Below, in pieces: positions 13,141-59,839 of a DNA stretch of 64,000 nt (its first letter is position 1; each line of letters opens with the position of its first letter). The stretch is from contig NC_083420.1 of the NCBI RefSeq assembly GCF_020745735.1, forward strand, positions 73,254,237 to 73,318,236, read 5' to 3'. Under the pieces are notes generated by a model. The model was not told the origin of the DNA and made no database searches. It saw only the letters and a list, made by a program, of their open reading frames with translations. The position numbers and the translations under genes were made by a program. Origin of the DNA: Hemiscyllium ocellatum. Lineage: Eukaryota.

Positions 13141-13977
13141 AATGTTTTATTGGCTTTTTAGATTCAGGTAAGTTAAGTTCTTACTGTTATAAAAGAGCAG
13201 GCTCTAGGAGATGAGTGGCTAACTCTCGTTCTTTGATCATACATCTAAACCTGAGATATTAAACACGCATTTTAATTTATTATATGCACACGTGCGAACA
13301 TTTCTGTCTGTGATTCCCAGGATTTGGTCATATGCGGTTGACACTGTCCCTTGGAGTTCTGCCTTTGTTTCAGAGGCCTGGAAATGATTCTTTTCTCAAG
13401 GATATTATGTAAATGTGCAAATTTCTGCTTGTCTTTCTGATGTTGAACAGGAAGCTGTGCTCCCTATCAACGCTCAGCCCGATGCAATGCATTGGGAAAC
13501 CAGGCTACTTTAGTGATACCATAACCTCCATAATCTCGGACATTGATAGCAAAAAATGGACTGGAAACGCAACTTGCCCAGAAAGCAAAACTCGGGAACA
13601 GAAAGATATTTGGCCCAAAGCTCGAAATAACGAGACACTGAAACCCCAAATGTCCATTTACACAGTTTCTCCAGATGAATTATGGTGCGATTTTACATTA
13701 TTTAGCTCTAATCTGTGATCAGAACTAACGATTCTTTCTGGAACCTATGTTGTTTTGGGGGGGGGGGGGGAATGTCTGCTGAATGGCAACTGCAAAAATC
13801 TCTTGGAATAATGTCAAGTAGAATCAAGTGAAGCTGCAGTATCTCTTCAGTTTGGCTTCTTTTATCATTGCAAAAGTGATTTGATTGATCAGGTATCGGT
13901 TATTATTGGATTAGATGAAATCTTGAAAATGATTCTTGTCTTCCATTTCCCTTTATTTTACATTGACTCTCACCTGT

Positions 13978-29064: not shown

Positions 29065-32000
29065 AGCATAACAGAGCATAGAAAAGTACAACACAGAACT
29101 GATCCTTCGCCCCGCGATGTTATACTGGCGATTATTCCTAATCTAAAATAAAATAACATAACCTAGGCACCCGTCAATTTACAGCTGTCCATGTGCACGT
29201 CCAGCGTCGCTTAAGTGTCCAGAATGACTCTGCTTTAACCACTACCGCTCCCAACGCATTCCATGCATTCACGACTCTCAGTGGAATGAACCTACCTCTG
29301 ACATCACCTCGACAGCTTCCTCCACAAACTTTAAAACTATGATGCTTCATGCAAGTTAATCCAGTCATGGGGAAAAGTCTCTGGTTTTACACTCAATCCA
29401 AGCCTCTCATGACCTTGCATACCTCGATAAGTTCACCTCTCATCCTCTTTCATTCTAGAGAGAAATTTCCAAGCTGAGTCTAACTCTCCTTGTAACACAA
29501 ACCTTCTGTAAATTATCGGTTTCTTTCCTTTAATAAGGCGACCTAAACTGGACATAATACTCTAAATGTGGTCTCATCAGGGTCTTGTAGAACTGCAGCA
29601 AAACCTCGCAGCCCTTAAACTCGATCCGCCTGTTAACGAAATCTAAAACACCATACACTTCTTTAACAACCCTATCCATTTGGGTGGCAACTTTGAGGGA
29701 TCTCTGCACTTGAACACCAAGAAACAGATGTTCCTCTACACTGCCAAGAATCCTATCTTGAATGCTACAATCAGCATTCAAGTCCGACCTTCCAAAATGC
29801 ATCACTTCTCATTTGTCAAAATTGAGCTCCATCTGCCATTTCTCGGTCGAGCTCTGCATCCTGTGTATGTCACGCTGCAGCCTGCAAAAGACCTTGGTAC
29901 AATCAACGGTACCTCCAACGTTGTGTAATCGGCAAATTTACTAACCCACGCCTCAACATCCTCACTAAAGTTATAAAAATAATCAACAAAGTGCAGAGGC
30001 TTAAGAAGAGAGCCCTACGTGACACCATTCACCATTGACCTCTGGGCAGAATACTTTCCAGCTACAACTACCCTTTACCTTCTTTAAGCTAACCAAGTCT
30101 GAATCCAGAAAGCTAAATCTTCCTGTATCACATACCTCCTGACCTTGTGAATGAGCTGACCATAGGAAACCTTATCAGGTTGCTTTCTGAAGTCCATATG
30201 CACAACATCCACCTTCGTCGACCTGGCTCGTCACCTCTTCAAAGAACTCAATAAAATTTGTGAGACATGATTGCCCCTCACCTCGCCATGCTGACTGCCT
30301 TTCATTATGCTGAGCTTTTCCAAGTAGTCAAAAATGCTATGACTCAGAATTATTTCCAAAATCTTGGTGACAACAGACGTAAGTCGGACTGGCCTATAAT
30401 TGCTAGGGATTTCCCTATTACTCTTTTAAAAATGAACAACATTCACCTCCCTTCAATCCTCCAGTACGATTCCTGTGTGAGTGAAGAAGCAACCATCTTC
30501 GCCAGCTTCTTAGCAACCTCCTTTCTCACTTCCTGGAGCCACCTAGGATGAATCTGGACTGGCCCTCGGACTTACCAATCGTATTATTAGCCAAAAATTT
30601 CCAGCACATCAGATTCATCAATCTTGATCTGCTCAGGCTTAATTCCCAGCTCCTCAAAGTTCTGATTCACAACAACGTCCCTTACCTTCGTGAAACCGAA
30701 CCAAATAATGCATTTGGGGATTCCCCTATCTGCTGAGACTCCACGCACAAGTTCCCTACGCTATCCCTGATCTACCCTACCTTCTTCGTTATCATTCTCT
30801 TATTCCTCAGGTATGAATAAAATGCGTTTGCGTTCTCTCTAATGGTTAACGCCAAGCCCTTTTTCTGCTGCCTCCTGGCTCTCCTCAGTCGATTTGGGGG
30901 ATTATTTCTGGCAAGCCTGTAATCTTATCACACTGTGCTACACCCTTGCTTCCACCACCTAACATAAGCTGCCTTCTTCCTTTTGATATGAAGCTCATCT
31001 GTTGTCGTCATCCAAGGCTCCTTAATCTTAACCCTTCTTGTCTGTCTCGAGGAACAGATTTGTGTATCACTCACAACAACTGCACCTTAACCAGCGCCTC
31101 AACTTGCCTGTTGCGCCCTTTCTGTGGAGCAATTGCTCCCAATCTGTACTTCCCAAATCCTGTTCGATAACGACATAATTTCCTTGTCGACGATTAAAAA
31201 TCTTCCTATGGTTATTGCTCTCTTCCCTCTCCATTGCTATTGTAAAAGTGAGGCAGCTATGGTCACTATCATCAAATTGTTCTCTCACCTCGTGATCTGA
31301 CACCTGTCCAGGCTCATTACCGAGCACCAAATACAAAATGGCTTCTCCCGTCGTCGTCTTGTCCACATACTGAATAAGAAGGCCAGTGAGTCTGACTTCA
31401 GTGGTGGGCAAAGTCTTAGAGAGAATGGTAAGGGATAAGATTTATGAACATCTGGGTAGGAATAACGTGATCAGGGATAGCCAGCATGGTTTTGTGAAGG
31501 GCAGGTCGTGCCTCACAAACCTTATTGAGTTCTTTGAGAAGGTGACCAAGGAAGTGGATGAGGGTAAAGCAGTAGATGTTGTGTATATGGATTTTAGTAA
31601 GGCGTTCGATAAGGTTCCCCATGGTAGGCTAATGCTAAAACTTCGGAGGTATGGCATTGAGGATACATTAGAGGTTTGGATTAGGAATTGGCTGGCTGGA
31701 AGGAGACAGAGGGTAGTAGTTGATGGATTATGTTCATCTTGGAGTGCAGTTACTAGCGGTGTACCACAAGGATCTGTTTTGGGACCATTGCTTTTTGTTA
31801 TCTTTATAAATGATCTAGAGGAAGGACTTGAAAGCTGGGTAAGCAAGTTTGCGGATGACACAAAAGTCGGTGGAGTTGTGGATAGTGAGGAAGGAAGTGG
31901 TAGGTTACAGCGGGATATAGATAAGTTGCAGAGCTGGGCGGAAATGTGGCAAATGGAATTCAATGTAGCTAAGTGCGAAGTCGTTCACTTTGGTAGGAAT

Positions 32001-34560
32001 AACAAGATGATGGATTACTGGGCTAATGGTAGGCTACTTGGTAGTGTGGATGAGCAGAGGGATCTTGGTGTCTATGTACACAGATTTCTGAAAGTTGCCA
32101 CCCAGGTAAATAGTGCTGTGAGGAAGGCATATGGTGTACTGGGCTTTACTGGCAGAGGAATTGAGTTCCGGAGTCCTGAGGTCATGTTGCAGTTGTATAA
32201 GACTCTGGTGCGGCCTCATCTGGAGTATTGTGTGCAGTTTTGGTCGCCATACTATAGGAAGGATGTGGAAGCTTTAGAACGAGTGCAGAGGAGGTTTACC
32301 AGGATGTTGCCTGGAATGGTAGGAAAATCTTATGAGGAAAGGCTGAGGCACTTGGGGCTGTTCTCATTGGAGAAGAGAAGGTTTAGGGGAGATCTGATAG
32401 AAGTGTATAAGATGATTAGGGGTTTAGATAGGGTAGATACTAAGAACCTTTTACCGCTAATGGAGTCAGGTGTTACTAGGGGACATAGCTTTAAATTAAG
32501 GGGTGGTGGGTATAGGACAGATGTTAGGGGTAGATTCTTCACACAGCGGGTTGTGAGTTCATGGAATGCCCTGCCCGTATCAGTGGTGAACTCTCCTTCT
32601 TTATGGTCATTTAAGCGGGCATTGGATAGGCATTTGGAAGTTATTGGGCTAGTATAGGTTAGGTAGGATTCGGTCGGCGCAACATCGAGGGCCGAAGGGC
32701 CTGTACTGCGCTGTATCCTTCTATGTTCTATGTTCTATGTTCTAAGACCCTCCTGAACACACCTGACAAAATCGGCTCCATCCAAACCATCTGCACTAAA
32801 TAGGTTCCAGTCAATATTGGAAAAGTTGACTTCATCCATAACAATAACCCTGCTACATTTGCATTTTTCCAAAATCCGGTGGCCTATGAGTTCTTCAATC
32901 TCCCTATTGCTATTAGAGAGTCTTCAGAATACCCCAGTGTGGTGGCTGATACATTACTGTTCCTAACTTCAACCCATACTGACTCAGCAGACGAACCCTC
33001 CTCAAGAACCTTCATTTGTGTAGCTGTAACACACTCTGTAATTAGCAATGCCACCCCCCCCCCCACCCCGTTTTTCCACCCTTCCTGGTCTTTGAAAGTT
33101 CTTACCCTGGAAGATGTCACAAATATTCCTGCCCCTGTGAAACCCCCGTGTACGTTATGACTACAACATAATAATTCCAAGCACTGATCCATGCTGTAAG
33201 TTCATCAATCTTATTTCTGACACTCCCTGAGTTAAAGCAGACACACTTTAATAGATCGCTTTGATTCATCACATGAAAAAAACTTATCCAATAGATTCAC
33301 CCCATCCTGTCACTGCCTTAGCTACAACTACCCCCTCACAGTTTGGTTCCCAACCCGCTGTGAAACGACATTTAACCCTCCCAAACCACACGAATGAGTC
33401 TCCCAGCCGGGACATTTGTGGCCCTCCAGTTCAGGTGCAACTCATCCTTCATATACAGGTCCCACCTTACCCGAAGGCATCCCAATGGTCTAAATATCTG
33501 AAGCCCTCCTTCCTGAACAAGCCTCGCTGCCACGTGTTAAGTTACACTCGCTGACTGTTTCTCACCTCACTATCTCGCGGCATCGGTAGCAAACTGGAGA
33601 TCACTAATCTACTCGTCCTCGCTTAAGCTTCCAACCGAGCTCTCCGTCGTCACTTTTCAGATCCTCGTTCAATTTCCTGGCTACATCATTGGTGCGCATA
33701 TGTACTACGATTTCTGGCTGCTCCCCCTCCCCATAAAGAATCCTGTAAAGCCAATCAGCGAAATCCCGGACACGGGGAAGTAACCTACCTTCCTGGAGTC
33801 CCATTCCTGACCATAAAATCTCCTGTTAATCCATCAACTACTGTGTCCTCTACGACTAGCGCTTTTCTATTCTCGCCCCGTTCCTTCTGAGCCACAGTGC
33901 CAGTCTCAGTTCTAGAGTCCCGACAGCTATGGCTTTCCATTCATCGGCCGTCCCCACCATCAGTATATGAAACGGCACACTTATTGGGGAAGGGAACGGC
34001 CACAGGGAATCCCTACTCGGTACGACGGATCCCCATTCTCCCTCTGACTGTAACCCAGCTGTCCATATGCTGTGTCTAACAAATGACCACCTCCCTGTAC
34101 ATCCTTTAAATTTTCCCCACAGCCTCTCGAATGATCTGCAGTTCAATCACCTCCAGCTCCAGTTCCTTAACTCGGCTTTCGAGGGGCTGGCATTGGATGC
34201 ATTTCCTGCACATGTGGTCGTGTCTTTCACCTGCACATTCTATAGGATGAACATGTAACTGTCCTAACAGCCATACCCCGGTAATCTGAGAGCCCACACT
34301 GGACTAAAAAAAAAGACGAAATGAAGGAAAAAATGAGAAAACATTAAAACTTACCGAGTTTACAGCATCTTTGTAAGTTTACCGCTGGTGGGTGGGAGGG
34401 AGGCCTTCTAGTGTATGGCCTCAGGTATAGATCCCAACCACTTAAAAACTTCTTAAGCGCCCTCGCTTCTCTCCGCCCTTTCTCCTCACTGGTCTGCTCA
34501 AAATAGAGGTCTGTCTCCTGATGTAATTCCTTTTTAAGTGGTAAATATTGGCCTACCAGG
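29065..34560 (-). mobile_element. Old near full-length CR1 (5'UTR, ORF1, ORF2, tail), interrupted by a young CR1 at 31380-32742
   Basis: ORF1 pieces 34106-34297 (HMCRKCIQCQPLESRVKELELE) and 33604-33804 (QPEIVVHMRTND); endonuclease 32884-33192 and 31067-31411; RT end 29530-29805 and 29174-29368; tail near 29065. Confidence 0.9.
31380..32742 (+). mobile_element. Young 5'-truncated CR1 with intact RT C-terminal frame and TAAGA target-site duplication
   Basis: Uninterrupted 423-aa ORF 31386-32657 (QHGFVKGRSCLTNL, FADDTK); (TTCTATG)n tail; TAAGA at 31375-31379 and 32743-32747. Nearly identical to 57659-59022. Confidence 0.96.
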
Positions 34561-34980: not shown

Positions 34981-37900
34981 ACATAGAACATAGAACATAG
35001 AACAGTACAGCACAGAACAGGCACTTCAGCCAACGATGTTGTGCCGACAACTGTTCCTCATGTATGCACCCTCAAATATCTATGACCATGTGTATGTCCA
35101 GTAGTCTCTTAAATGTCCCCAATGACCTTGCTTTCACATCTGCTGCTGGTAACGCATTCCATGCTGTCACAAATCTCTGTGAAAAGAACCCGCCTCTGAC
35201 ATCCCCACTATACCTTCCTACAAACAGCTTAAAACTATGACCCCTTGTGTTCGTCATTTCTGCCCTGGGAAATAGTCTGTGGCTATCGATAATGCCTCTC
35301 ATTATCTTGTATACCTCAATTAGGTCCCGCCTCTTCCTCCTTTTCTCCAATGAAAAAACACCGAGCTCAGGCAACCTCTCTTCGTAAGATCGGCCCTCCA
35401 GTCCAGGCAGCATCCTGGCAAACCTCCTCTGAACCCTCTCCAAAGCGTCCACATCTTTCCTATATTAGGGCGACCAGAAATGGATGCAGTCTTCCAAGTG
35501 CGGTCTAACCAAAGTATTATAGATCTGCAACAAGATCTCACGACTCTTAAACTCAATCCCCCTGTTAATGAAAGCCAAAACACCATATGCTTTCTTAACA
35601 ACCCTGTCTACTTGGGTGGCCATTTTAAGGGATCCATGTACCTGCACACCAATATCCCTCTCTTCCTCCACACTGCCAAGAATCCTATCCTTAATCCTGT
35701 ACTCAGCTTTCAAATTCAAACTTCCAACATTCATAACCTCGCATTTATCCAGGTTGAACTCCATCTGCCACCACTCAGCCCATCTCTGCATCATGCCAAT
35801 AAACCGCTGCAGCTTACAACATCCCTCTATACTGTCAACGACAGCTCCAACCTTTGTGTCGCCTGAAAACTTGCTGACCCATCCTTCAATTCCCTCAAAT
35901 CCAAGTCATTAATAAAAATTACAAACAGTCGAGGCCCAAGGACACAGCCCTGTGGAACACCACTCACCACAGTCTTCCAGGCAGAATATTTTACTTCTAC
36001 TTCTACTCGCTGTCTTCTGTTGGCCAGCCAATTCTGTATCCAGACAGCTAAGTTCCCCTGTATTTCATTCTTCCTGGCCTTCTGAATGAGTCTACCATGG
36101 GGGAACCTTATTAAATGCATTGCTGAAGTCCATATACACCACATCCACAGCCCGACCCTCATCAACCTTTCCAGTTACATCGTCAAAGAAATCGATAAGG
36201 TTTGTGAGGCATGACCTGTCCCTCACAAAGCCATGTTGAGTGCATTTAATCAAGCCATCCTATTCCAGGTGGCCATACATCATATCCCTCAGAATCCTTT
36301 TGAACACCTGCAGACGACAGACGTGAGACCTACTGACCTGTAATTGCCGGGGATTTCTCTATTTCCTTTCTTGAAGGGAGGAATTACATTTGCCTCTCTC
36401 CTGTCCTCAGGTATGACTCCAGTGGAGAACGAGGATGCAAAGATCTTCACAAGTGGCGAAGCAATTGAATTTCTCCTTTCCCAAAGGAGCCGAAGATAAA
36501 TCTGGTCCGGGCCTGGCGACTTGTCAATCTTAATGTTTGTCAAAAATTTCAACACATCAGCTTCTTCTATCTCGATACATTCCAACATGCACACCTGCTC
36601 TTCAAAGGTTTCATTCAGTCCAAAGTTCGTTTCTTTCGTAAAGACAGAAGCAAAAAACTCATTTAGGGCTTCCCCTACCCCCTCAGACTCCACACACAAA
36701 TTCCCTATGCTATCCCTGATCGGCCCTACTCTTTCTTTGAGCATTCTCTTATTCCTCACATAAGTGTAAGATGCCTTTGTGTTCTCCCTCATCCATTCTG
36801 CCAAGCCTTTCCCGTGCCCCCTCCTGGCTCTCCTCAGATCATTTTTGAGCTCCTTCTTCGCATGCCTGTCATCTTCTAGAGCTGAGCTTGGCCTAAGCTT
36901 CCTCCTCCTTATGTAAGCTACCGTTTTCCTTTTGACGAGAAGCTCCACTGCTCTCTTCATCCAAGGTTTCTTTATCTTACCACTTCCTGCCTGTCTCAGA
37001 GGGACATATTTATTCATCACTTGCAACAACTGTTCCTTTAACAGTCTCCACATATCTATAGTACCTTTACCATGGAACGATTGCTCCCAATCCATGCTTG
37101 CTAACTCATGTCTAATCGCATCATAGTTTCCTCTTTCCCAGTTAAATATCCTCCCATATTGCCTAATCCTCTCCTTCTCCATAGCTATGTAGAATGTGAG
37201 GCAGTTGTGGTCACTAACACTAAAATGCTCTCCCACCACATGATCTGATACCTGCCCCGGCTCGTTTCCGAGCATCAAGTCTAGAATGGCCTCTCCCCTT
37301 GTCGACCTGTCAACGTACTGATTTAGGAAACCCTCGCAAACACACCTTACAAAAACAGCGCCATTCAAATCTTCTTCTCGAAGGACGTTCCGATCAAAAT
37401 GGGGAAAGTTAAAGTCACCCATTACAACAACCCTTTCATGTCCACACTTTTCCAAAATTTGCCGACCTATGCTTTCTTCCATCTCCCTGCTGCTATTGGG
37501 GGGCCTGTAGTAAAGCCCTAACGATGTGACTACTCCCTTGCTGTTCCTAATTTCCACCGATACGGACTCGGTAGGTAGACCTTCCTAGACAATGGAAGCT
37601 TCAGTAGCTGTGATTCCCTCTCGAATTAGTAGTGTTATTCCCCATCCTCTTTCCCCACCCTCCATATTCTTTTTAAATGCACTAAACCCTGGAACATCCA
37701 GCAACCATTCCTGCCCCTGAGAAACCCATGTCTTTGTTCTGGCCACAACTTCAGAGCATCAGATACTGACCATTGCTCTAAGTTCATCACTTTTATTTCT
37801 GATACTCCTTGCGTTAAAGCAACCACACTTTAACTGACCCCTTGGTTCTTTCCCAGGAAAATCCTTCCCACAAAGCTGGTCTACCTCTTCCTATTGCCTC

Positions 37901-38450
37901 ATCTGCATCAACTCTCACCTCCAGTATACAGCTCAGTTTCTCTCCCCCTCCCCCCGACATACTAGTTTAAACACGCTCAAACTACTCAAGCAAACCTTCC
38001 ACCCAGGATATCGGTCCCCTTCCAGTTCAGATGTAACCCGTCCTTCTTGTGCAGGTCTCCCTTTCCCCAGGAGCCATCGCAATTATCTACATACCTGAAA
38101 CCCTCCCTCCTACACCAGCTGCGCAGCCACGTGTTAAGCTGCAGCCACTCCCTGTTCCTCGCCTCCATATCTCGTGGCACCGGTAGTAAACTACAGAACA
38201 CTACTCTGTTTAACCTGCTTTACAGCTTCCATCCTAACTCCCTGAAATCACTTCTTATATCCACGATCAGTTTCCTGCCTATATCATTATTGCTAATATG
38301 CAATACGATTTCTGGCTGTTTGCCATCCCCTTTTAGTTTCTTATACACCCGATCTGAGTCATCCCGGACCCTGGCACCAGGGACGAAACCCACCTTCTGG
38401 GAATCCCGATCCTGACCACAAAATCTCCTGTCGATTCCCCTAACTATCTC
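34981..38450 (-). mobile_element. CR1 LINE (end of ORF1, frameshifted ORF2, (TTCTATG)n tail)
   Basis: ORFs 37986-38201 (KDGLHLNWKG), 36289-37557 (endonuclease/linker, 422 aa), 35827-36165, 35465-35794 and 35072-35452 (RT); catagaa repeats at 34982-35003. Confidence 0.93.
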
Positions 38451-40884: not shown

Positions 40885-42050
40885 TTCCGGGTAATCCAAG
40901 ATGGAGGACAGGAAAAAATTCTGGCTGTAACAGCTGCTCATTTTTTGAGATATTTAAGGAGCTGGAAGTGATTTCCTCGATTTCCAGGAGCAACAATTAC
41001 TGTCTTATATGTTTTGCATTATTTTGGAACTTTGGGGGAAAGAAGTCAAACCAACAGCAGTTTTAAAAGGGAGAAGAACAGACAAAGAAAGACATGGTGA
41101 AGTTATTGCAGGAGAGAGTGAGAGATAACCTGCATAGTTACTGCCTTTGCTATTTAAATTCATGTATTACTGACATCGAAGTGCATCTGGGAAAATTATC
41201 AAACAGTGAAATTCACAACTGATCTTGGAGGAACTGTTGGGCGAAGTTCACAACACGGAATCAATAAGTTAATCGTTGCTTTAAGTGAGGCCTACAGAGA
41301 ATCTGCCGTAGAAAGTAGAGTGGGTTTTTCTTGATTATATGTTTTTGGAGATTTGCTTCTTGATTAAACTTAAAATATACAGCATAACTATTAATCTAAC
41401 GGGGTGCAGTGTTTGTAGAGAAATAAGACAGTGTTTTTTTTCTGCGTCTTTAGGTTGTGAAGGAGTAGGAATGGCCTTTAATGGAGTGATACGTACTTCC
41501 TGTCAGATGTGGGAGTTTAAGGAGATTTTAAGGCTTACTGCGGATTATATCTGCCATAAGTGCTGTTGGATGCGAATCTTATTAGATCGAATGGATCGTT
41601 TGGAGAGACAGTTAGAAGTAATGAGTAATTTGCAACAGCAACAGTATGTGATGGAGGGTAGTTATACGAAAGTGGGAAAGTCTCAGATACAGTCACATAG
41701 ATGGGTTATCTCCAGGAAAGGTACGAGAGGTAGGCATCTAGTGCAGAGTCTTTTGTGGATATGTGCATTTCAAACAGGTATGCTGTTTTGGAAAATATAG
41801 GGGGTGATGGATTCTCAGGGGAATGTTGCACGAACAACCAAGTTTCTTGTACTGGGACTGGCTCCAATGCAATGAGGGATACGTTGGCTTCCAAGAGATC
41901 AATTGTGTTCGGGGATTCTGTAGTCCGAGGTACAGATAGACGTTTCTATGGCCAGCAGAGAAAAAGCAGAATGGTGTATTGCTTCTCTGGTGCCAGGATC
42001 AAGAATGTCTCAGAGAGGGTGCAGAATTTCCTCACGGGGGACAATGCCCA
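40885..42050 (+). mobile_element. CR1 5' half (5'UTR + ORF1), 3'-truncated, in the JH-CH1 intron
   Basis: ATG at 41471; SCQMWEF..YICHKCCW..DRMDRLERQLE (zinc finger/coiled coil), then NRYAVLE..SIVFGDSVVRGTDRRF (SGNH esterase). Stops abruptly at about 42050. Confidence 0.88.
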
Positions 42051-43385: not shown

Positions 43386-46300
43386 CAATAGACAATAGGT
43401 GCAGGAGTAGGCCATTCTGCCCTTCGATCCTGCACCATCATTCAATCGGATCATAGCTGATCATCCTTAATCAGTATCCTGTTCCTGCATTATCTCCATA
43501 GCCCTTGATTTCACTATCCTTGAGAACCCCATCCAACTCTTTCTTAAATGAATCCAGAGACTGGGCCTCCACTGCCCTCTGGGGCAGAGCATTCCACATA
43601 GCCACCACTCTCTGGGTGAAGACGTTTCTCCTCATCTCTGTCCTAAATGGTCTACCCCGTATTTTTAAGCTGTGTCCTCTGGTTCAGCAATCACCCATCA
43701 GCGGAAACATGTTTCCTGCCCCCAGAGTGTCCAAACCTTTAATAATCTTATATGTCTCAATCAGATCCCCTTTCAGTCTTTTAAACTCAAGGGTATACAA
43801 GCCCAGTCGCTCCAGTCTTTCAGCGTATGGTAGTCCCGCCATTCCAGGAATTGACCACATGAACCTACGCTGCACTCCCTCAATAGCCAGAATGTCTTTC
43901 CTCAAACTTGGAGACCAGAACTGCACACAATTCTCCAGGTGTGGTCTCACCAGGGTCCTGTACAGCTGCAGAAGAACCTTTTTGCTTCTGTACTCAATCC
44001 CTCTTCTAATGAAGGCTAGGATGCTATTAGCCTACGTCACTACCTGCTGTACCTGCATGATTACCTTCATTTACTGGTGTACAAGAACACCCAGAACTCT
44101 TTGTATTGCCCCTTTACCTAAATTGATTCCATTTAGGTAGTAATCTTCCTTCCTGTTCGTGCCCCCAAAGTGGATAACCATGCATTTATCCACATTAAAC
44201 TGCATCTGCCATGCATTTGACCACTTACCTAACCTGTCCAGGTCACCCTTTCATCTCCTAACATCCTCCTCACATTTCACCCTGCCACCCAGCTTAGTAT
44301 CATCAGCAAATTTGCTAATGCTATTACTAATACCATCGTCTATATCATTGATATATATTGTAAAAAGCTGGGATCCCAGCATTGTTCCCTGCGGTATCAC
44401 ATGGCCACTGCCTGCCATTCCGAAATGGAGCCGTTTATCACTACTCTTTGTTTCCTGTCAGCCAACCAACTTTTAATCCACGTTTAATTCTTTGCCCCAA
44501 ATTAGGCCGTGCGCCCTAATTTTGTTCACTAACCGCCTATGTTGGACTTTATCAAAAGCTTTCTGAAGTGAAGATACATTATATTTACTGGATCTCCCTC
44601 GTCCATCTTCAGAGTTGCGTCCTCAACTCTGAAGATTTGTCAAGCATGATTTCCCCTTCATAAATCCATGCTGATTCTGATCTATCATGTTTCTGCTATC
44701 CAGATGTGTCGTAATTTCATCCTTTAAAATAGACTCCAGGATCTTTCCCACTACTGAGATCAAACCAAATGGTCTATAATTTCCTCTTTTTTTTCTCTCC
44801 CACCTTTCTTAAAAGGTTGTACAATACTAGCCACCCTCCAATCCGCAAGAACTGATGCTGAATCTATCGAACTCTGGAAAAGAATAACCAATGTATCCAC
44901 GATTTCTCAAGCCACCTCCTTCTGTACCCTGGGGTGTAGACCATCAGGCCCGGGGACTTACCAACCGTCAGATCTAACAAAGACTCTCCAAAACAAATTC
45001 CTGGTAAATATAAATTCCATAAAGTTCAAGTCCTTCTGTCACTGTTACCTCAGGGGGATTGCTTGCGTCTTCCACAGTGAACATGAATCTGAAGTACCAA
45101 TTCAATTATTCCACCATTTCTTTGTTCCCTGTAATATATTCCCCTGTTTCTGCCTTCAAGCATCCAATTTTAGTCTTAACCATTTTTTTTTGCCCTTCAC
45201 ATACCTAAAAAGAAGCTTTTGCTATCCTCCTTTATATTTTTGGCCAGTTTACCTTCGCACCTCATTTTTTTCTCTGCGTATTTCCTTCTTAGTAAGCCTC
45301 TGTTGTTCTTTAAAAGCTTCCCAGTCATCCGTTTTCTCATTTACCTTTGCTATGTTATACTTTTTCTCTTTGGACTTTATATGTTTCTTAACTTCCCTCG
45401 TCAGCTACGGCCACTCATGCCTCCTCCTAGGATCTTTCTTCCTTTTTTTGAATGAACTGATGCTTCATCTTCTGCATAATGTGCAGAAATATCTGCCATT
45501 GTTCCTACACGGTCATCCCTGCTAAGGTATTGCACCATTGAACTTTGGTCAGGTCCACCCTCATAACTCCATTGTTCCACTTATTCAACAGATATATTAT
45601 CAGTTCCGATTGTACCCTCTCCCTCTCAAATTGCAAATTGAAGCTTATTGTATTATGGTCACTACTTCTCAATGGCTCCTTCACTTCGAGGTCCCTGATA
45701 ATTCTGGTTCGTTGCACAATACCAGATCCAGAATTGCCTTTTCCCTTGTAGGCTTCAGCACCAGCTGTCCTTAGAACGCATCTCGGAGGCACAAAGTCTC
45801 TTTCTTGAGGTCCAATACCATCCTGATTCTCTCAGTCTACCTGCAAGTTGAAATTCCCCCATAACAACTGTAGCAACATCTTTGCGACAGGCCAATTTCA
45901 GCTCCTGATTCAACTTACATCCAACATTCAGACTATTGTTTGGGGCCCGTAGATAACTCCCAAGAGGATATTTTTACCCCTTAGAATTTCCCAGCTCTAT
46001 CCATACTGACTCTACATCCCCGATTCTAGGTCTCCCCCCGCAAGGGACTGAATATCATCCCTGACCAACATGGCCACCCCACCCCCTCTGCCCGTCAGTC
46101 TGTCCTTGCGATTGTACGTGTCGCCTTGAATGTTCATTTCCCAGGCCATATCCACTTTAAGCCATGTCTCAATTATCCCCCAAAATATCGCATCTGCCAA
46201 TTTCTAAAAGAGCCTCAAGCTCATCCATCTTATTTCTAATGCTTCGTGCATTCATATATAGTATTTTTAATTAATTCCTGGCCTCAGCCTTCCCATCAAC

Positions 46301-47140
46301 TACTATTTCACTCAACCTTGCAGCATGATCCCTTTTTGAGTTGTCTGCTTTATTGATACAGTTGTCTTTCTTGACTTCCTTTGTTCCAACTTTCCCTTCA
46401 ATTTCCTTCTTAAACATCCAGTTTGTTCTCCCACCCCACCCCCAGCCCCACCCCCGCTACTTAGCTTAAACATAGCTGTGTTGCAGTAGCAAACCTGCCT
46501 GCCATAATGCTGGTCCCTAACCTATTAAGGTGCAATCCGTCTCTCTTGTAGAATTTATGCTGACCACAAAACATACCCCAGTGATCCAATAATTTAAATC
46601 ATTGCTTCCTGCACTAGTTTCCCAGCCACACTTTCAAGTCCACTCTTCCTGTTTCTGGCGTCACCACCCCGAAGAACTGGATTCAAACTGGAGATAACCA
46701 TCCTGGACGTCCTGATTTTCAGCCTTCTTCCTAGTTCTCCGAAGTCCCGTTGTAATATGTTCCTCCTCTTCTTCCCGACATCATTTGTGCTGACATGTAC
46801 CAGCACCTCTGGCTCTTCACCTTCGTTGTTAAGAATTTCCTGCATTCTCTCTGTCATGTCTTTAAACCTAGCACCTGAAAGGCAACACACCTTCATTAAG
46901 TCCCGCCTGCTGCCACAAAAAACCCGGTCAGGTTCTCTCACTATGGAGTCCCCTATTACCAGGGCTCTGCGCGATGTCCAAGCCTTCCGCTCTGCCTACA
47001 CGCCAACTTTTGAATGACAGACATGGCCGCCTCGCGGACTGGCAATGTCATCTGTCTGTACTCTTTCCAAAAGATTCAACTTGTTCCTGACAGGTACTTC
47101 CCCCGGGGTCTCTTCCACCCATCTCCTCTCTGCCTTCCTT
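43386..47140 (-). mobile_element. CR1 LINE (partial ORF1, frameshifted ORF2, ATTGTCT-type tail)
   Basis: 46594-46941 (EPEVLVHVSTND), 46012-46200 (GIIETWL..GGGVAMLVRD), 45505-45792 (SSDHNTI), 43684-43950 (RPHLENCVQFWSP); caatagacaatag tail at 43386. Confidence 0.92.
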
Positions 47141-52560: not shown

Positions 52561-52660
52561 TCTACCTTAGTTTGACAGTCTTATGCTCTGTCATGTATAT
52601 GCTTCTAATGGCCTAGCAGTAATAATTCTGGACTGTTAATCCAGAGACTCTGGTCATATT

Positions 52661-54970
52661 CCTCAGTTTCTCGGAGGATCACGTGACGGCTGTTTGTCCG
52701 GTTCGAAGTCCAGGGTGAGTTCCAGTTCTTAGTTTTTCTTATTTTGTTTTAAAAACTAAAAATTTAAGTTGTAAGTTCCAGTACTTAACTTTTTTTTAAA
52801 CTTTTTTAAACTAAAATTTAAGAAGTTTTTTTTAAAAAAACGCCGGGTAGACCCGGAGGCTTGTGTTGCTAGGTTACCTGGGTAGGATTTTTTCTCTATT
52901 TAAACGCGCAGGCGAGCTGTAGGCCTCAGTTTCTCGGAGGATCACGTGACGGCTGTTTGTCCGGTTCGAAGTCCAGGGTGAGTTCCAGTTCTTAGTTTTT
53001 CTTATTTTGTTTTAAAAACTAAAAATTTAAGTTGTAAGTTCCAGTACTTAACTTTTTTTTAAACTTTTTTAAACTAAAATTTAAGAAGTTTTTTTTAAAA
53101 AAACGCCGGGTAGACCCGGAGGCTTGTGTTGCTAGGTTACCTGGGTAGGATTTTTTCTCTATTTAAACGCGCAGGCGAGCTGTAGGCCTCAGTTTCTCGG
53201 AGGATCACGTGACGGCTGTTTGTCCGGTTCGAAGTCCAGGGTGAGTTCCAGTTCTTAGTTTTTCTTATTTTGTTTTAAAAACTAAAAATTTAAGTTGTAA
53301 GTTCCAGTACTTAACTTTTTTTTAAACTAAAATTTAAGAAGTTTTTTTTAAAAAAACGCCGGGTAGACCCGGAGGCTTGTGTTGCTAGGTTACCTGGGTA
53401 GGATTTTTTCTCTATTTAAACGCGCAGGCGAGCTGTAGGCCTCAGTTTCTCGGAGGATCACGTGACGGCTGTTTGTCCGGTTCGAAGTCCAGGGTGAGTT
53501 CCAGTTCTTAGTTTTTCTTATTTTGTTTTAAAAACTAAAAATTTAAGTTGTAAGTTCCAGTACTTAACTTTTTTTTAAACTTTTTTAAACTAAAATTTAA
53601 GAAGTTTTTTTTAAAAAAACGCCGGGTAGACCCGGAGGCTTGTGTTGCTAGGTTACCTGGGTAGGATTTTTTCTCTATTTAAACGCGCAGGCGAGCTGTA
53701 GGCCTCAGTTTCTCGGAGGATCACGTGACGGCTGTTTGTCCGGTTCGAAGTCCAGGGTGAGTTCCAGTTCTTAGTTTTTCTTATTTTGTTTTAAAAACTA
53801 AAAATTTAAGTTGTAAGTTCCAGTACTTAACTTTTTTTTAAACTAAAATTTAAGAAGTTTTTTTTAAAAAAACGCCGGGTAGACCCGGAGGCTTGTGTTG
53901 CTAGGTTACCTGGGTAGGATTTTTTCTCTATTTAAACGCGCAGGCGAGCTGTAGGCCTCAGTTTCTCGGAGGATCACGTGACGGCTGTTTGTCCGGTTCG
54001 AAGTCCAGGGTGAGTTCCAGTTCTTAGTTTTTCTTATTTTGTTTTAAAAACTAAAAATTTAAGTTGTAAGTTCCAGTACTTAACTTTTTTTTAAACTAAA
54101 ATTTAAGAAGTTTTTTTTAAAAAAACGCCGGGTAGACCCGGAGGCTTGTGTTGCTAGGTTACCTGGGTAGGATTTTTTCTCTATTTAAACGCGCAGGCGA
54201 GCTGTAGGCCTCAGTTTCTCGGAGGATCACGTGACGGCTGTTTGTCCGGTTCGAAGTCCAGGGTGAGTTCCAGTTCTTAGTTTTTCTTATTTTGTTTTAA
54301 AAACTAAAAATTTAAGTTGTAAGTTCCAGTACTTAACTTTTTTTTAAACTTTTTTAAACTAAAATTTAAGAAGTTTTTTTTAAAAAAACGCCGGGTAGAC
54401 CCGGAGGCTTGTGTTGCTAGGTTACCTGGGTAGGATTTTTTCTCTATTTAAACGCGCAGGCGAGCTGTAGGCCTCAGTTTCTCGGAGGATCACGTGACGG
54501 CTGTTTGTCCGGTTCGAAGTCCAGGGTGAGTTCCAGTTCTTAGTTTTTCTTATTTTGTTTTAAAAACTAAAAATTTAAGTTGTAAGTTCCAGTACTTAAC
54601 TTTTTTTTAAACTAAAATTTAAGAAGTTTTTTTTAAAAAAACGCCGGGTAGACCCGGAGGCTTGTGTTGCTAGGTTACCTGGGTAGGATTTTTTCTCTAT
54701 TTAAACGCGCAGGCGAGCTGTAGGCCTCAGTTTCTCGGAGGATCACGTGACGGCTGTTTGTCCGGTTCGAAGTCCAGGGTGAGTTCCAGTTCTTAGTTTT
54801 TCTTATTTTGTTTTAAAAACTAAAAATTTAAGTTGTAAGTTCCAGTACTTAACTTTTTTTTAAACTAAAATTTAAGAAGTTTTTTTTAAAAAAACGCCGG
54901 GTAGACCCGGAGGCTTGTGTTGCTAGGTTACCTGGGTAGGATTTTTTCTCTATTTAAACGCGCAGGCGAG
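52661..54970 (+). repeat. Tandem array of nine 253/263-bp monomers (last one partial)
   Basis: Units start at 52661, 52924, 53187, 53440, 53703, 53956, 54209, 54472 and 54725. By eye they differ only by a 10-bp TTTTTTAAAC indel. Each unit has CACGTG, GTGAGT, TATTTAAA and CGCGCAGGCG. Confidence 0.98.
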
Positions 54971-55125
54971 TAACCCGAGGCACTTCGGCAGAAGAGCCTC
55001 CCACCCGCCCTCCTCCTCTAACCTAAATAATAAGACCCGTTGCGGCAAGCAGGTAAGTGCTGCATTTTGCTTGTTTGGTTTCTTTACATTTAGTTTTTTT
55101 TAAAGAAAGCTAGCTTTTTAGAGGG

Positions 55126-56051
55126 ATGGCAGTGCAGGCAGTGCAATGTTCCTCTTGCAACATGTATGAGGTGAGGGAAGCCATTAGCGTCCCTGCTGAG
55201 TACACTTGCAAGAAGTGCACCCATCTCCAGCTCCTCCAAGCCCGTGTTAGGGAATTGGAGCTGGATTTGGATGAACTGCGGATCATTCGGGAGGCAGAGA
55301 GGGTCATAGATCAGAGCTTTAGGGAAGTAGTTACTCCGAAAGTTCAAGATAGATGGGTGACAGTGAGGGGGAGTGGGAGGAGGAAGCCAGTGCAGGGACC
55401 CCCTGCGGTCATTCCCCTCAAGAACAAGTATACCGTTTTGGATACTTGTGGGGGGGATGACTTACCAGGGGCAAGCAACGAGGTTCAGGCCACTGGCACG
55501 GAGCCTGGCCCCGTTGCTCAGAAGGGAAGGGTGGAGAAAGGTAGAGCGATAGTTCTTGGGGACTCGATAGTGAGGGGTACAGACAGATGGTTTTGTGGGG
55601 GCGACAGTGACTCACGTTTGGTATGTTGCCTCCCAGGTGCAAGGGTACGTGATGTCGCTGATCATGTTTTCCGGGTCCTTAAGGGGGAGGCGGAGCAGCC
55701 CAGATCGTGGTCCACGTTGGCACCAACGATATCGGTAGGAAGAGGGGTGAGTATGTCAGACAGGCTTTCAGGGAGCTAGGTTGGAAGCTTAGAGTTAGAA
55801 CAAACAGAGTTGTAGTCTCTGGTTTGTTACACGTGCCACGTGATAGAGAGTCGAGGAATAGGGAGAGAGAGCAGTTAAATGCGTGGCTACAGGGATGGTG
55901 CAGGAGGGAGGGATTCCGGTTTCTGGACAACTGGGGTTCTTTCTGGGGAAAGTGGGACCTCTATAAAAAGGATGGTCTACACCTGAACCTGAGGGGCACC
56001 AGTATCCTTGGGGGGAGGTTTGCTAGTGCTCTTTGGGAGGGTTTAAACTAA
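55126..56051 (+). CDS. CR1 ORF1 (zinc finger/leucine zipper + SGNH esterase), one frameshift near 55700
   Basis: CSSCNMY..CKKC..LELDLDEL; VLGDSIVRG; frame change to VVHVGTNDIG..DGLHLN, ending TAA at 56049-56051. Confidence 0.88.
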
Positions 56052-58885
56052 CTCCGCCGGGGCATTGGAACCTGGACTGTAGCTTTAGGGTACAGGACCT
56101 TGAGTGTAGGGAGGTTATGAATAATGCAGCGATCTCGAAGGAGGGTGCCTGTAAACAGAAGGGTGGATTGAAGTGTGTATACTTCAATGCCAGAAGTATA
56201 AGAAATAAGGTAGGTGAACTTGCAGCGTGGGTTGGTACCTGGGACTTCGATGTTGTGGCCATTACAGAGACGTGGGTAGAACAGGGACAAGAATGGCTGT
56301 TGCAGGTTCCAGGGTTTAAATGTTTTAGTAAGATCAGACATGGGGGTAAAAAAGGGGGAGGTGTGGCATTACTTGTCAAAGATAGTATTACAGCAGTGGA
56401 ATGGACGATGGAAGAGGACTTGCCATCTGAGGTAGTTTGGGCTGAGGTTAGAAATAGGAAAGGTGAGGTCACCCTGTTAGGTGTTTTCTACAGGCCTCCT
56501 AATAGTCCTAGAGAAGTAGAGGATAATATTGCGAGGATGATTCAGGAAAAGAGTGAAGGTAGCAGGATGGTTGTTATGGGGGACTTTAACATCCCAGATA
56601 TTGACTGGGAGAGCTATAGCTCGAGTTCATTAGATGGGTCGGTGTTTATCCAATGTGTGCAGGAGGGTTTCCTGACACAATATGTAGACAGGCCAACAAG
56701 AGGTGAGGCTATACTGGATTTGGTTCTAGGTAATGAACCAGGCCAGGTGTTAGACTTGGAGGTAGGTGAGCACTTCGGGGACAGTGACCACAACTCGGTG
56801 ACTTTTACTTTAGTGATGGAGAGGGATAAGTGTGCGCCGCAGGGGAAGAGTTATAGCTGGGGGCAGGGAAATTATGATGCAGTGAGGCATGACTTAGGAT
56901 GTGTGGATTGGAAAAACAGGCTTCAAGCGAAGAACACTAATGAGATGTGGGGATTGTTCAAGGAGCAGCTACTACGTGTCCTCGATAAGTATGTACCAGT
57001 CAGGCATGGTGTAAAGGGCCTTGTGAGGCAGCCGTGGTTTAGTAAGGAATTGGAATCCCTTGTGAAAGGGAAGAAGGCGGCATATGTAAAGATGAGGCGT
57101 GAAGGTTCAGTTGGGGCGATAGAGAGTTATAAGGTAGCCAGGAAGGATCGAAAGAGAGAGCTAAGAGAAGCGAGAAGGGGACATGAAAAGTCTTTAGCTG
57201 GTAGGATTAGGGAAAACCCAAAGGCTCTCTATAGGTATGTCAGGAATAAAAGGATGACTAGGATAGGTATCGGTCCAGTCAAGGATAGTAGTGGGAAGTT
57301 GTGTGTGGAGGCGGAGGAGATTGGAGAGACACTAAATCAATACTTTTCATCAGTATTCACTCAGGAACAGGACACTGTTGCTGATGTGAATATGGAGTCA
57401 CAAATGATTAGAATGGATGGCCTGGAAATATGCAGGGAAGAGGTTCTGGGAATATTGGAAAGGATGAAAACAGATAAGTCTCCTGGGCCTGATGGCATTT
57501 ACCCTAGGATCCTATGGGAAGCTAGGGAGGAGATAGCAGAGCCATTGGCCTGGATTTTTATGCCGTCATTGTCAACGGGAATAGTACCAGAAGACTGGAG
57601 GATAGCGAATGTTGTCCCCTTGTTCAAGAAAGGGAGTAGGGATAGCCCTAGTAACTATAGGCCAGTGAGTCTGACTTCAGTGGTGGGCAAAGTCTTAGAG
57701 AGAATGGTAAGGGATAAGATTTATGAACATCTGGATAGGAATAACGTGATCAAGGATAGCCAGCATGGTTTTGTGAAGGGCAGGTCGTGCCTCACAAACC
57801 TTATTGAGTTCTTTGAGAAGGTGACTAAGGAAGTGGACGAGGGTAAAGCAGTAGATGTTGTGTATATGGATTTTAGTAAGGCGTTCGATAAGGTTCCCCA
57901 TGGTAGGCTAATGCTAAAACTACGGAGGTATGGCATTGAGGATACATTAGAGGTTTGGATTAGGAATTGGCTGGCTGGAAGGAGACAGAGGGTAGTAGTT
58001 GATGGACTATGTTCATCTTGGAGTGCAGTTACTAGCGGTGTACCACAAGGATCTGTTTTGGGACCATTGCTTTTTGTTATCTTTATAAATGATCTAGAGG
58101 AAGGGCTTGAAAGCTGGGTAAGCAAGTTTGCGGATGACACAAAAGTCGGTGGAGTTGTGGATAGTGAGGAAGGAAGTGGTAGGTTACAGCGGGATATAGA
58201 TAAGTTGCAGAGCTGGGCAGAAATGTGGCAAATGGAATTCAATGTAGCTAAGTGTGAAGTCGTTCACTTTGGTAGGAGTAACAAGAAGATGGATTACTGG
58301 GCTAATGGTAGGCTACTTGGTAGTGTGGATGAGCAAAGGGATCTTGGTGTCCATGTACACAGATCTCTGAAAGTTGCCACCCAGGTAAATAGTGCTGTGA
58401 GGAAGGCATATGGTGTACTGGGCTTGATTGGTAGAGGAATTGAGTTCCGGAGTCCTGAGGTCATGTTGCAACTGTATAAGACTCTGGTCCGGCCTCATCT
58501 GGAGTATTGTGTGCAGTTTTGGTCGCCATACTATAGGAAGGATGTGGAGGCATTGGAACGAGTGCAGAGGAGGTTTACCAGGATGTTGCCTGCAATGGTA
58601 GGAAAATCTTATGAGGAAAGGCTGAGGCACTTGGGGCTGTTCTCATTGGAGAAGAGAAGGTTTAGGGGAGATTTGATAGAGGTGTATAAGATGATTCGGG
58701 GTTTAGATAGGGTCGACACTGAGAACCTTTTACCGCTAATGGAGTCAGATGTTACTTGGGGACACAGCTTTAAATTAAGGGGTGGTAGGTATAGGACAGA
58801 TGTTAGGGGTAGATTCTTTACACAGCGGGTTGTGAGTTCATGGAATGCCCTGCCAGTAGCAGTGGTGAACTCTCCTTCTTTATGA
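56033..58885 (+). CDS. CR1 ORF2 (APE endonuclease + reverse transcriptase), 950 aa, premature stop near C-terminus
   Basis: YFNARS, ITETW, GDFN, SDHN, KSPGPDG, QHGF, FADDTK. TGA at 58883-58885 where the sister copy has TGG. Confidence 0.95.
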   Translation: MGGFKLTPPGHWNLDCSFRVQDLECREVMNNAAISKEGACKQKGGLKCVYFNARSIRNKVGELAAWVGTWDFDVVAITETWVEQGQEWLLQVPGFKCFSKIRHGGKKGGGVALLVKDSITAVEWTMEEDLPSEVVWAEVRNRKGEVTLLGVFYRPPNSPREVEDNIARMIQEKSEGSRMVVMGDFNIPDIDWESYSSSSLDGSVFIQCVQEGFLTQYVDRPTRGEAILDLVLGNEPGQVLDLEVGEHFGDSDHNSVTFTLVMERDKCAPQGKSYSWGQGNYDAVRHDLGCVDWKNRLQAKNTNEMWGLFKEQLLRVLDKYVPVRHGVKGLVRQPWFSKELESLVKGKKAAYVKMRREGSVGAIESYKVARKDRKRELREARRGHEKSLAGRIRENPKALYRYVRNKRMTRIGIGPVKDSSGKLCVEAEEIGETLNQYFSSVFTQEQDTVADVNMESQMIRMDGLEICREEVLGILERMKTDKSPGPDGIYPRILWEAREEIAEPLAWIFMPSLSTGIVPEDWRIANVVPLFKKGSRDSPSNYRPVSLTSVVGKVLERMVRDKIYEHLDRNNVIKDSQHGFVKGRSCLTNLIEFFEKVTKEVDEGKAVDVVYMDFSKAFDKVPHGRLMLKLRRYGIEDTLEVWIRNWLAGRRQRVVVDGLCSSWSAVTSGVPQGSVLGPLLFVIFINDLEEGLESWVSKFADDTKVGGVVDSEEGSGRLQRDIDKLQSWAEMWQMEFNVAKCEVVHFGRSNKKMDYWANGRLLGSVDEQRDLGVHVHRSLKVATQVNSAVRKAYGVLGLIGRGIEFRSPEVMLQLYKTLVRPHLEYCVQFWSPYYRKDVEALERVQRRFTRMLPAMVGKSYEERLRHLGLFSLEKRRFRGDLIEVYKMIRGLDRVDTENLLPLMESDVTWGHSFKLRGGRYRTDVRGRFFTQRVVSSWNALPVAVVNSPSL

Positions 58886-59839
58886 TCATTTAAGCGGGCA
58901 TTGGATAGGCATTTGGAAGTTATTGGGCTAGTGTAGGTTAGGTAGGATTCGGTCGGCGCAACATCGAGGGCCGAAGGGCCTGTACTGCGCTGTATCTTTC
59001 TATGTTCTATGTTCTATGTTCTATATTCTGGTGACATGGTTTATAATATACGAATGGCATGTGGTTGAGTTTGAATCCAATAAAAATTTGGAATTAAGAG
59101 CCTAATGTTAACTTCTGCTGTTCGTCACAAAGATCCACCTAATCCACTAACGCCTTTAAGGAAGGTAACTGCCATCCTTATCTGTTCTGGTCTACACCAG
59201 ACCCTAGAAACTCGCAATGTGTCAGAATCCTAACTGCCCATGTGGCAATCAGGGATTGGAAATGAATGTTGGCCCAAACAATGGTGCCCTCATTCTGTGG
59301 TTAATTTTATTTCTAAATAAATGTTCAACATCCATTTGGTGTCTCTGTCAAATCCTAACACAAAGTTACGCTTTGGTGAAATTCCACATGGCAAACAGAT
59401 TTCCACATTTTCCAAAGTTGCTCAGCCGTCGTTGAAGGTCATAGAGTGATTAGCCGTGAGAGAATGAAGGAAAGAGTGGAATTCAGCACTGCCTTCACCA
59501 ACATGATAATAACACATGGGCTATGATCTCAAGAGTCCCTTCTGGCTGTTAAGCTGGTACATGTTTTCTGAGTTGGCTCCTGTTCGAGTCAAACCTTTAC
59601 ATTTGGGGCTTGAGGTTGTCATATTTCTGAAACATCCCCTCCAGCACAAAGTGGAGAAACAACATTTCATCTTCAGCCTTCTGAACTTAATATTGTGTTC
59701 AACATGTGCTCAACACATTTAACTTGTGTACAACTTCTTCCGTTTATTTTAGCTTTTTATCATATCCTCCCATCGGTCATCCCACTGATTACCCTTTCCA
59801 GGCTGGCAGGTGACCCACCATTATTCTGAAATGTTCACA

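Follow-up and report, generated by a model that had tools for sequence, protein, structure and literature searches.

Why should a retrotransposon carry nine copies of one sequence unit in front of its first gene? The question is raised by a locus of the epaulette shark, Hemiscyllium ocellatum, in which a stretch of 64,000 nucleotides (contig NC_083420.1, positions 73,254,237 to 73,318,236 of the forward strand; hereafter "the window", with positions counted from its first letter) contains a full-length CR1-type long interspersed nuclear element (LINE) of 6.4 kb at 52661–59029, whose 5' end is a head-to-tail array of such units. Tandem promoter monomers are a textbook peculiarity of rodent L1, and the units of the shark element are probably tandem RNA polymerase II promoters as well, which would work, in another LINE clade, as the monomers of mouse L1 do. 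If this is true, redundancy of 5' units would be a solution to the loss of promoters and to 5' truncation on which LINE clades have converged. We infer the promoter role of the units, transcription starts at their junctions and the importance of unit number from the features described below, all of which lie on the forward strand of the window unless otherwise indicated. The window is free of stretches of N, and contigs regarded as human were kept out of the comparisons.

Tandem Repeats Finder reports one array at 52661–54970 (period 253, 9.0 copies, 97% matches, score 4260), which are exactly the coordinates given by the first-pass annotation of this DNA. When unit 1 is compared with the window by blastn, four units measure 263 bp and are 100% identical (starts at 52661, 52924, 53440 and 54209), and five are of a 253-bp form (starts at 53187, 53703, 53956, 54472 and 54725), the sole difference between the two forms being a 10-bp indel through which one copy of the 10-bp direct repeat CTTTTTTAAA is lost. 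No substitution separates the nine units over 2310 bp. In order they measure 263, 263, 253, 263, 253, 253, 263, 253 and 246 bp, so that two long units and a short one are followed, twice over, by a long unit and two short ones; the ninth unit lacks the terminal 7 nt (CTGTAGG) and is fused at 54970/54971 to a unique leader, referred to here as the tether. Since this 3' fusion is in phase, the 5' edge is a clean break against an unrelated flank and nothing similar flanks the array (no further copy of the unit was found by blastn elsewhere in the 64 kb), the array can be assigned with high confidence to the LINE insertion. The first-pass claim that these 2.3 kb are part of the element is thereby upheld, and a flanking satellite is ruled out on the same two grounds, namely the in-phase fusion to the tether and the restriction of the unit to the array. 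No open reading frame (ORF) of at least 25 amino acids (aa) lies wholly within the array; the four that were listed overlap only its edges or the tether.

The internal layout of the unit is that expected of a promoter module. Each unit contains exactly one CACGTG (unit position 20), one GTGAGT (55), one CCGGGTAGACCCGG (183), one TATTTAAA (237) and one GCGCAGGCG (246), and all the motifs that had been named beforehand were thus recovered, one per unit. The sequence TCAGTT, which fits the initiator consensus YYANWYY, stands at unit positions 3 and 266, which places the first T of the TATA-like TATTTAAA at -31 from the A of the next initiator. This 31-nt spacing is kept across every unit junction: the TATA-like box of unit 1 (52897–52904), for instance, begins at 52897 and pairs with an initiator A at 52928 in unit 2. 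Even the last box (54951–54958) faces a CA initiator-like site (54981–54982) at the same distance, this time within the tether. In unit 1 the initiator-like TCAGTT occupies 52663–52668, with a predicted +1 A at 52665, and it recurs at each unit start. The E box CACGTG follows at 52680–52685, inside GATCACGTGAC and at approximately +16 to +21 relative to the predicted +1, and the donor-like AGG|GTGAGT at 52715–52720; both occur once per unit, and a second donor-like GTAAG is found at unit position 111. The classical TATA-to-initiator spacing provides each junction with a predicted start site, which makes a model of tandem promoters easily testable.

Two further observations favour the promoter reading. 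The first base of the insertion, 52661, lies only 4 nt before the predicted +1, and under random 5' truncation a start at 5 nt or less from a predicted +1 would be expected with a chance of about 11/253, or ~4%. The second concerns CpG dinucleotides, of which there are 11 per unit. Their observed/expected ratio is 1.21 in the units, to be compared with 0.45 in ORF1, 0.38 in ORF2 and 0.37–0.43 in the flanks, so that the earlier statement that CpGs are kept in the units holds when set against the 0.38–0.45 of the two ORFs. As CpGs are kept in the units yet depleted in the body, the lineage has retained those of the units while losing those of the body, which is what a lineage would show if its promoter stayed unmethylated in the germ line.

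Read in order, the unit would comprise an initiator, a GC- and CpG-rich leader of ~52 nt with the E box, the GTGAGT, an AT-rich spacer and an upstream-promoter segment of ~70 nt that ends with TATTTAAA. The box of unit N would then direct an RNA polymerase II start at the head of unit N+1, and transcripts starting from unit 2 onward would retain complete promoters for the next generation. In this way, an element copied through RNA could keep a promoter of the upstream (TATA) type, and a copy 5'-truncated inside the array would still keep working units. It is nevertheless important to stress that a TATA-directed start copies at most N-1 units, and arrays should therefore shrink unless they are re-expanded, by recombination or slippage, or unless unit 1 can fire alone by means of its initiator and downstream E box. 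For the same reason, the description of the promoter as "self-renewing" in the first-pass annotation is unsupported as worded.

A comparable organization was found in the zebra shark, Stegostoma tigrinum (JAUUDQ010000272.1), in a CR1 whose body is 69% identical to the window element at the nucleotide level. At its 5' end this copy has a 217-bp unit repeated 1.8 times, the repeats being 97% alike, with a TATA box (TATAAATA) at 9755 and a donor-like site in each unit; the element starts about 33–37 nt downstream of the equivalent phase, and the CpG observed/expected ratio is 0.79 in the units versus 0.44 in the body. It lacks the remainder of the leader as well as ~40 codons of ORF1. The units of the two sharks cannot be aligned with each other apart from a short AT-rich match, and homology between them was accordingly rejected. 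The same design recurs in two sharks with unrelated unit sequences, as it does among L1 monomer types, and this too points to convergence. Taken together, the TATA/initiator spacing, the start of the insertion, the CpG retention and the zebra-shark CR1 lend support to the promoter-module anatomy proposed for the units at first reading. As a side observation, the insertion of the zebra-shark CR1 (9560–10010 and 13760–13800) interrupted the reverse-transcriptase region of a CR1 older than itself; a T9 filler is present, and ~30 bp of target were lost.

An alternative, which we consider rather unlikely, is that one or two units are the normal state of the leader in this family, and that at this locus the array expanded to nine once the element had inserted, by unequal sister-chromatid exchange or replication slippage. 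Copy number would then be functionless, and a piece of a transposon would here have begun its conversion into a minisatellite. Such an expansion is compatible with the units being promoters and disputes only the inheritance of nine of them through RNA. The absence of substitutions among the units is the outcome that recent amplification in place would have, the order of long and short forms closes with long-short-short twice in succession, as a duplication of three units would give, and tandem arrays are known to arise from parts of transposons (PMC6947457, PMC9659126). However, a single binary character, the indel, cannot reveal the order of duplications, and the identity of the units needs no homogenization, since mutations are nearly absent from the remainder of the element as well. 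With ORF2 open, a single 1-nt deletion in ORF1 and a substitution-free array of 2310 bp, the segment 52661–59029 is one recent insertion and the copy is young. Moreover, the array starts at the predicted start phase and ends in the phase of the tether, which would be equally expected if the whole array had been retrotransposed.

Perfectly identical repeats are also where assemblers err, and the unit number or the perfect identity could in principle stem from mis-assembly or consensus polishing, the more so as the frameshift of ORF1 lies in a homopolymer run, a typical site of sequencing error. We regard such an artefact as highly improbable, given that the array, at merely 2.3 kb, is well inside single long reads, that units of the two lengths are intermingled instead of having been collapsed, and that the boundaries on both sides are clean. 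The ORF1 defect itself is a deletion of 1 nt in a C run at 55698/55699 (CCCC to CCC), as seen by comparison with the intact 308-aa ORF1 of a Logan contig (L001) that is 92.5% identical to the element. It may have arisen by genuine mutation or reflect a sequencing error in the homopolymer, and in the latter case, this being the only defect of the element, the copy would be intact.

Returning to the reading of the units as tandem promoters, several points weigh against it. The promoter case for this element is one built from sequence signals, and because the nine units are identical, their motif arrangement is in effect one observation. At a GC content of 38%, the units fall outside the formal definition of a CpG island. 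Arrays are absent from the other CR1 lineages examined, comprising four loci outside the window (L003, L004, L005 and L007) and two old copies within it. Finally, TATTTAAA sits in a T-rich tract that ends with CGCAG|G, and a strong acceptor-like site is found at the corresponding place in the leaders of the zebra-shark copy and of a metagenomic CR1 (L010), so that TATTTAAA may not be a TATA box. A related ambiguity affects the "NRF1-like" CGCGCAGGCG of the first-pass annotation: the sequence is present, but a YAG|G or CAG|G acceptor after a T-rich tract is an equally good reading of it. As for the wider occurrence of arrays, none of the other CR1 copies of the window has tandem 5' units, and a metagenome scan with an ORF1 alignment returned only four distant relatives, all of them without arrays. 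The metagenomic leader just mentioned (L010, positions 120–345, from JGI metagenome 3300026616) is made of two diverged modules of ~110 bp, each with a strong acceptor-like and a donor-like site; it can be aligned to the zebra-shark units, and it has a CCTCCTCTAACCTAA stretch in common with the tether of the window element.

These acceptor-like signals lead to a second alternative, in which the units are leader modules and not promoters, each combining a mini-exon and a mini-intron that serve splicing, export or translation, with transcription starting only at or upstream of the 5' end of the element. The layout would be an acceptor-like CGCAG|G, an exon of about 66 nt, the donor AGG|GTGAGT and an AT-rich intron of 187 or 197 nt. 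Donor-like signals are enriched in CR1 leaders: among nine shark/ray leaders, whose loci are not independent, GT[AG]AG donor-like pentamers number 20 in the sense strand of 1950 nt (10.3/kb) and 1 in the antisense strand, as compared with 3.7–4.8/kb in sense-strand CR1 ORFs, which makes them ~2.5 times commoner in leaders, and with 1.95/kb in the window overall. In most of the nine leaders, as judged by eye and not by script, a consensus donor stands ~50–185 nt upstream of a YAG that precedes the ORF1 ATG by a few to ~20 nt; the nine are the leaders of the window element (55053–55121), L001, L003, L004 (a weak fit), L009, L010 and L011, together with those of the old window copies whose ORF1 starts at 8876 (reverse strand) and 41471 (forward strand). 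Both the enrichment and this layout favour leader modules, as does the chain of such modules that L010 provides, alignable as it is to the zebra-shark units. On the other hand, leader modules leave unexplained why the insertion starts 27 nt past the phase of the TATA-like box, and why the phase matches in the zebra-shark copy; a retrotransposed copy would be left without a promoter; the pyrimidine tract at the acceptor-like site of the window unit is weak; and no spliced copy or transcript was seen. Considering all of this, we hold it to be very unlikely that the units are leader modules devoid of promoter function.

A promoter role and a role in splicing could, however, be combined. The tether (54971–55125, 155 bp) carries a consensus donor CAG|GTAAGT, from which an intron-like stretch extends (from 55053), and an acceptor-like AG at 55120–55121, 4 nt before the ORF1 ATG at 55126, and both sites are kept in L001. 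The donor and acceptor of such leaders may delimit a conserved intron, in an element whose copying proceeds from RNA that has not been spliced. Extending this to the array, each tandem unit would be a full TATA-plus-initiator promoter followed by a leader exon and a 5' splice site, with the acceptor placed before the ORF1 ATG. Two RNAs would result, an unspliced one serving as the retrotransposition template and keeping the units, and a spliced one serving for translation, with a short leader whichever unit had fired. We put this forward as a tentative and, on present signals, unlikely elaboration; if true, a LINE would divide its labour between two RNAs in the manner of a retrovirus.

Some features of the leader were considered as further signals and set aside. 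The small hairpin pointed out in each unit at first reading is without folding support, the folding energy of the unit RNA showing no excess of structure over shuffles (z-score -0.25). ATG is absent from the 2465-nt leader, which was dropped as a signal because 29% of dinucleotide-preserving shuffles of unit plus tether are equally ATG-free. Likewise, the 5' end of L001, ~8 nt past the predicted start within the tether, was rejected as start-site evidence, since a break of the assembly graph at the repeat edge explains it equally well. A weak alignment was also noted between the intron-like part of the tether (54971–55125) and unit positions 117–187, with a score of 37 where shuffled sequences give 22.8 +/- 4 and 2 out of 1000 attain that value. 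It hints that the unit may have arisen by duplication of an older leader, although low complexity may inflate the alignment score.

How, then, does the array compare with known systems? The 5' untranslated regions (5'UTRs) of mouse and rat L1 contain monomer arrays (A, F, Tf and Gf types, about 200 bp in mouse), and monomers are also described for other mammalian L1 (PMC5381506). The window element resembles rodent L1 in having head-to-tail 5' units followed by a unique tether before ORF1, here with nine units as candidate promoters and a tether of 155 bp, in keeping CpGs in the units, and in that unit types of related lineages are unrelated in sequence. It differs from rodent L1 in its clade, CR1 as judged by anatomy, its ORF1 being of the esterase kind and its tail a microsatellite in place of poly(A), and in that its units are AT-rich (38% GC) and possess a TATA-like box and an initiator at classical spacing together with a splice-donor-like site. 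We know of no L1 monomers with the latter features. The analogy with the rodent L1 monomer array, drawn already at first reading and the closest available, is supported as a likeness in workings and not in membership, the anatomy being that of CR1.

Within its own clade, the closest described leaders are those of chicken, turtle and fugu. The 5'UTR of chicken CR1-B has E boxes and measured promoter activity in a reporter, and E boxes are a common feature of vertebrate CR1 5'UTRs (PMC2734521); the same source (PMC2734521) refers to Kajikawa 1997 and Poulter 1999 for a 32-bp direct repeat in the leaders of turtle CR1 and fugu Maui. E boxes in the leader are shared by the shark element, but the chicken, turtle and fugu leaders are ~240 bp long with at most a short direct repeat, whereas in the window nine copies of a complete unit of 253/263 bp extend through 2.3 kb, the TATA-like box being linked to the initiator across the junctions. 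The zebra-shark copy is nearer, with its tandem 5' units, TATA box, per-unit donor-like site, start phase and a CpG ratio higher in the units than in the body, and it differs in having fewer than two units of unrelated sequence. A full-text literature search, of incomplete coverage, found no description of tandem monomer arrays in CR1 or in shark LINEs; this agrees with the first-pass statement that no equivalent had been described for shark CR1, while publications do exist on short direct repeats and on E boxes in the leaders of CR1.

A further comparison is offered by retrotransposons with long terminal repeats (LTRs), whose upstream promoter lies outside their own transcript and is restored in the copy by U3 regeneration. 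The problem of restoring an upstream promoter is the same, and LTR elements solve it by template switching between the terminal repeats. Unlike them, the shark element would solve it through redundant tandem units, at the cost of at least one unit per TATA-directed start.

The body of the element has the anatomy of a CR1-like LINE, by virtue of its esterase ORF1, its endonuclease/reverse transcriptase ORF2 and its microsatellite tail. ORF1 (55126–56051) encodes an SGNH/GDSL esterase (PF13472, E 5e-10, 40.5 bits versus a cut-off of 32.9), with a zinc-finger-like CxxC...CxxC motif visible in the N-terminal part of the translation. An esterase ORF1 with an N-terminal zinc-finger-like motif is a trait of the CR1-like group, as was reportedly described by Kapitonov and Jurka in 2003. 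ORF2 is open over 950 aa (56033–58885) and combines an N-terminal endonuclease of the apurinic type (PF03372, E 6e-20; PF14529) with a reverse transcriptase (PF00078, E 7e-35). Its best named match is a partial Hemiscyllium ocellatum protein (P0019) with 97% identity, and the named homologues are labelled solely as "reverse transcriptase domain-containing" proteins. The 3' untranslated region (58886–59029) contains a GGCC-GAAG-GGCC hairpin followed by a (TTCTATG)4.6 tail at 58998–59029, that is, a short microsatellite related to ATTCTRTG and without poly(A). The esterase ORF1 and the microsatellite tail place the element with the CR1-like elements and outside the L1 clade. At the overlap of the two ORFs, GGGTTTAAAC (56039–56048) contains two overlapping slippery heptamers directly before the ORF1 stop (56049–56051), and ORF2, which has no ATG close by, is in the -1 frame, which makes this site a candidate for programmed -1 frameshifting. 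In Rfam, the sole match is to mir-378 inside ORF1, at chance level (28 bits versus a threshold of 80).

As to the ends of the insertion, the first-pass annotation had the array begin exactly at the left target-site duplication. The start at 52661 was confirmed, but the duplication is weak: the candidate ATATT (52656–52660, forward strand, with a right match at 59023–59027) abuts both ends, an alternative TCTGGT (52649–54 and 59027–32) is offset by 6 nt, and a duplication of 5–6 bp is at chance level, random 30-nt pairs from the window sharing a 6-mer or longer in 14% of trials. In a sibling copy of the same family and in the zebra-shark copy, the duplication measures 3–5 bp or is absent. The sibling copy is 5'-truncated, lies on the forward strand at 31380–32744, and corresponds to the last 1365 bp of the element at 97.1% identity; the TTCTATG tail is common to it (32719–32744) and to the zebra-shark copy.

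As the copy at 52661–59029 is nearly intact, activity of its family may persist in the epaulette shark, and if so, this laboratory-bred species would allow experiments on CR1 transcription and its control. For genome annotation, arrays of this kind are better attached to the LINE model than masked as satellite.

A few records encountered on the way concern CR1 elements in unexpected places. An entry of 4159 bp labelled Pseudomonas aeruginosa (L009; GCA_019909505.1, JADHER010000072.1) contains a near-complete CR1 LINE with both ORFs and little leader, the ORF1 product of which (P0003) is named "SGNH/GDSL hydrolase family protein", and a CR1 ORF2 is also filed under Carnobacterium maltaromaticum. 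These records with bacterial labels look like contamination of bacterial assemblies by fish or shark DNA. Finally, the window holds at least seven older CR1 fragments (247–2986, 6373–8876, 33371–34219, 34981–38448, 41471–42042, 43583–44781 and 46482–47118), which show 63–72% identity at the nucleotide level or 30–68% at the protein level; with at least seven such fragments in 64 kb, the density of CR1 is high here.

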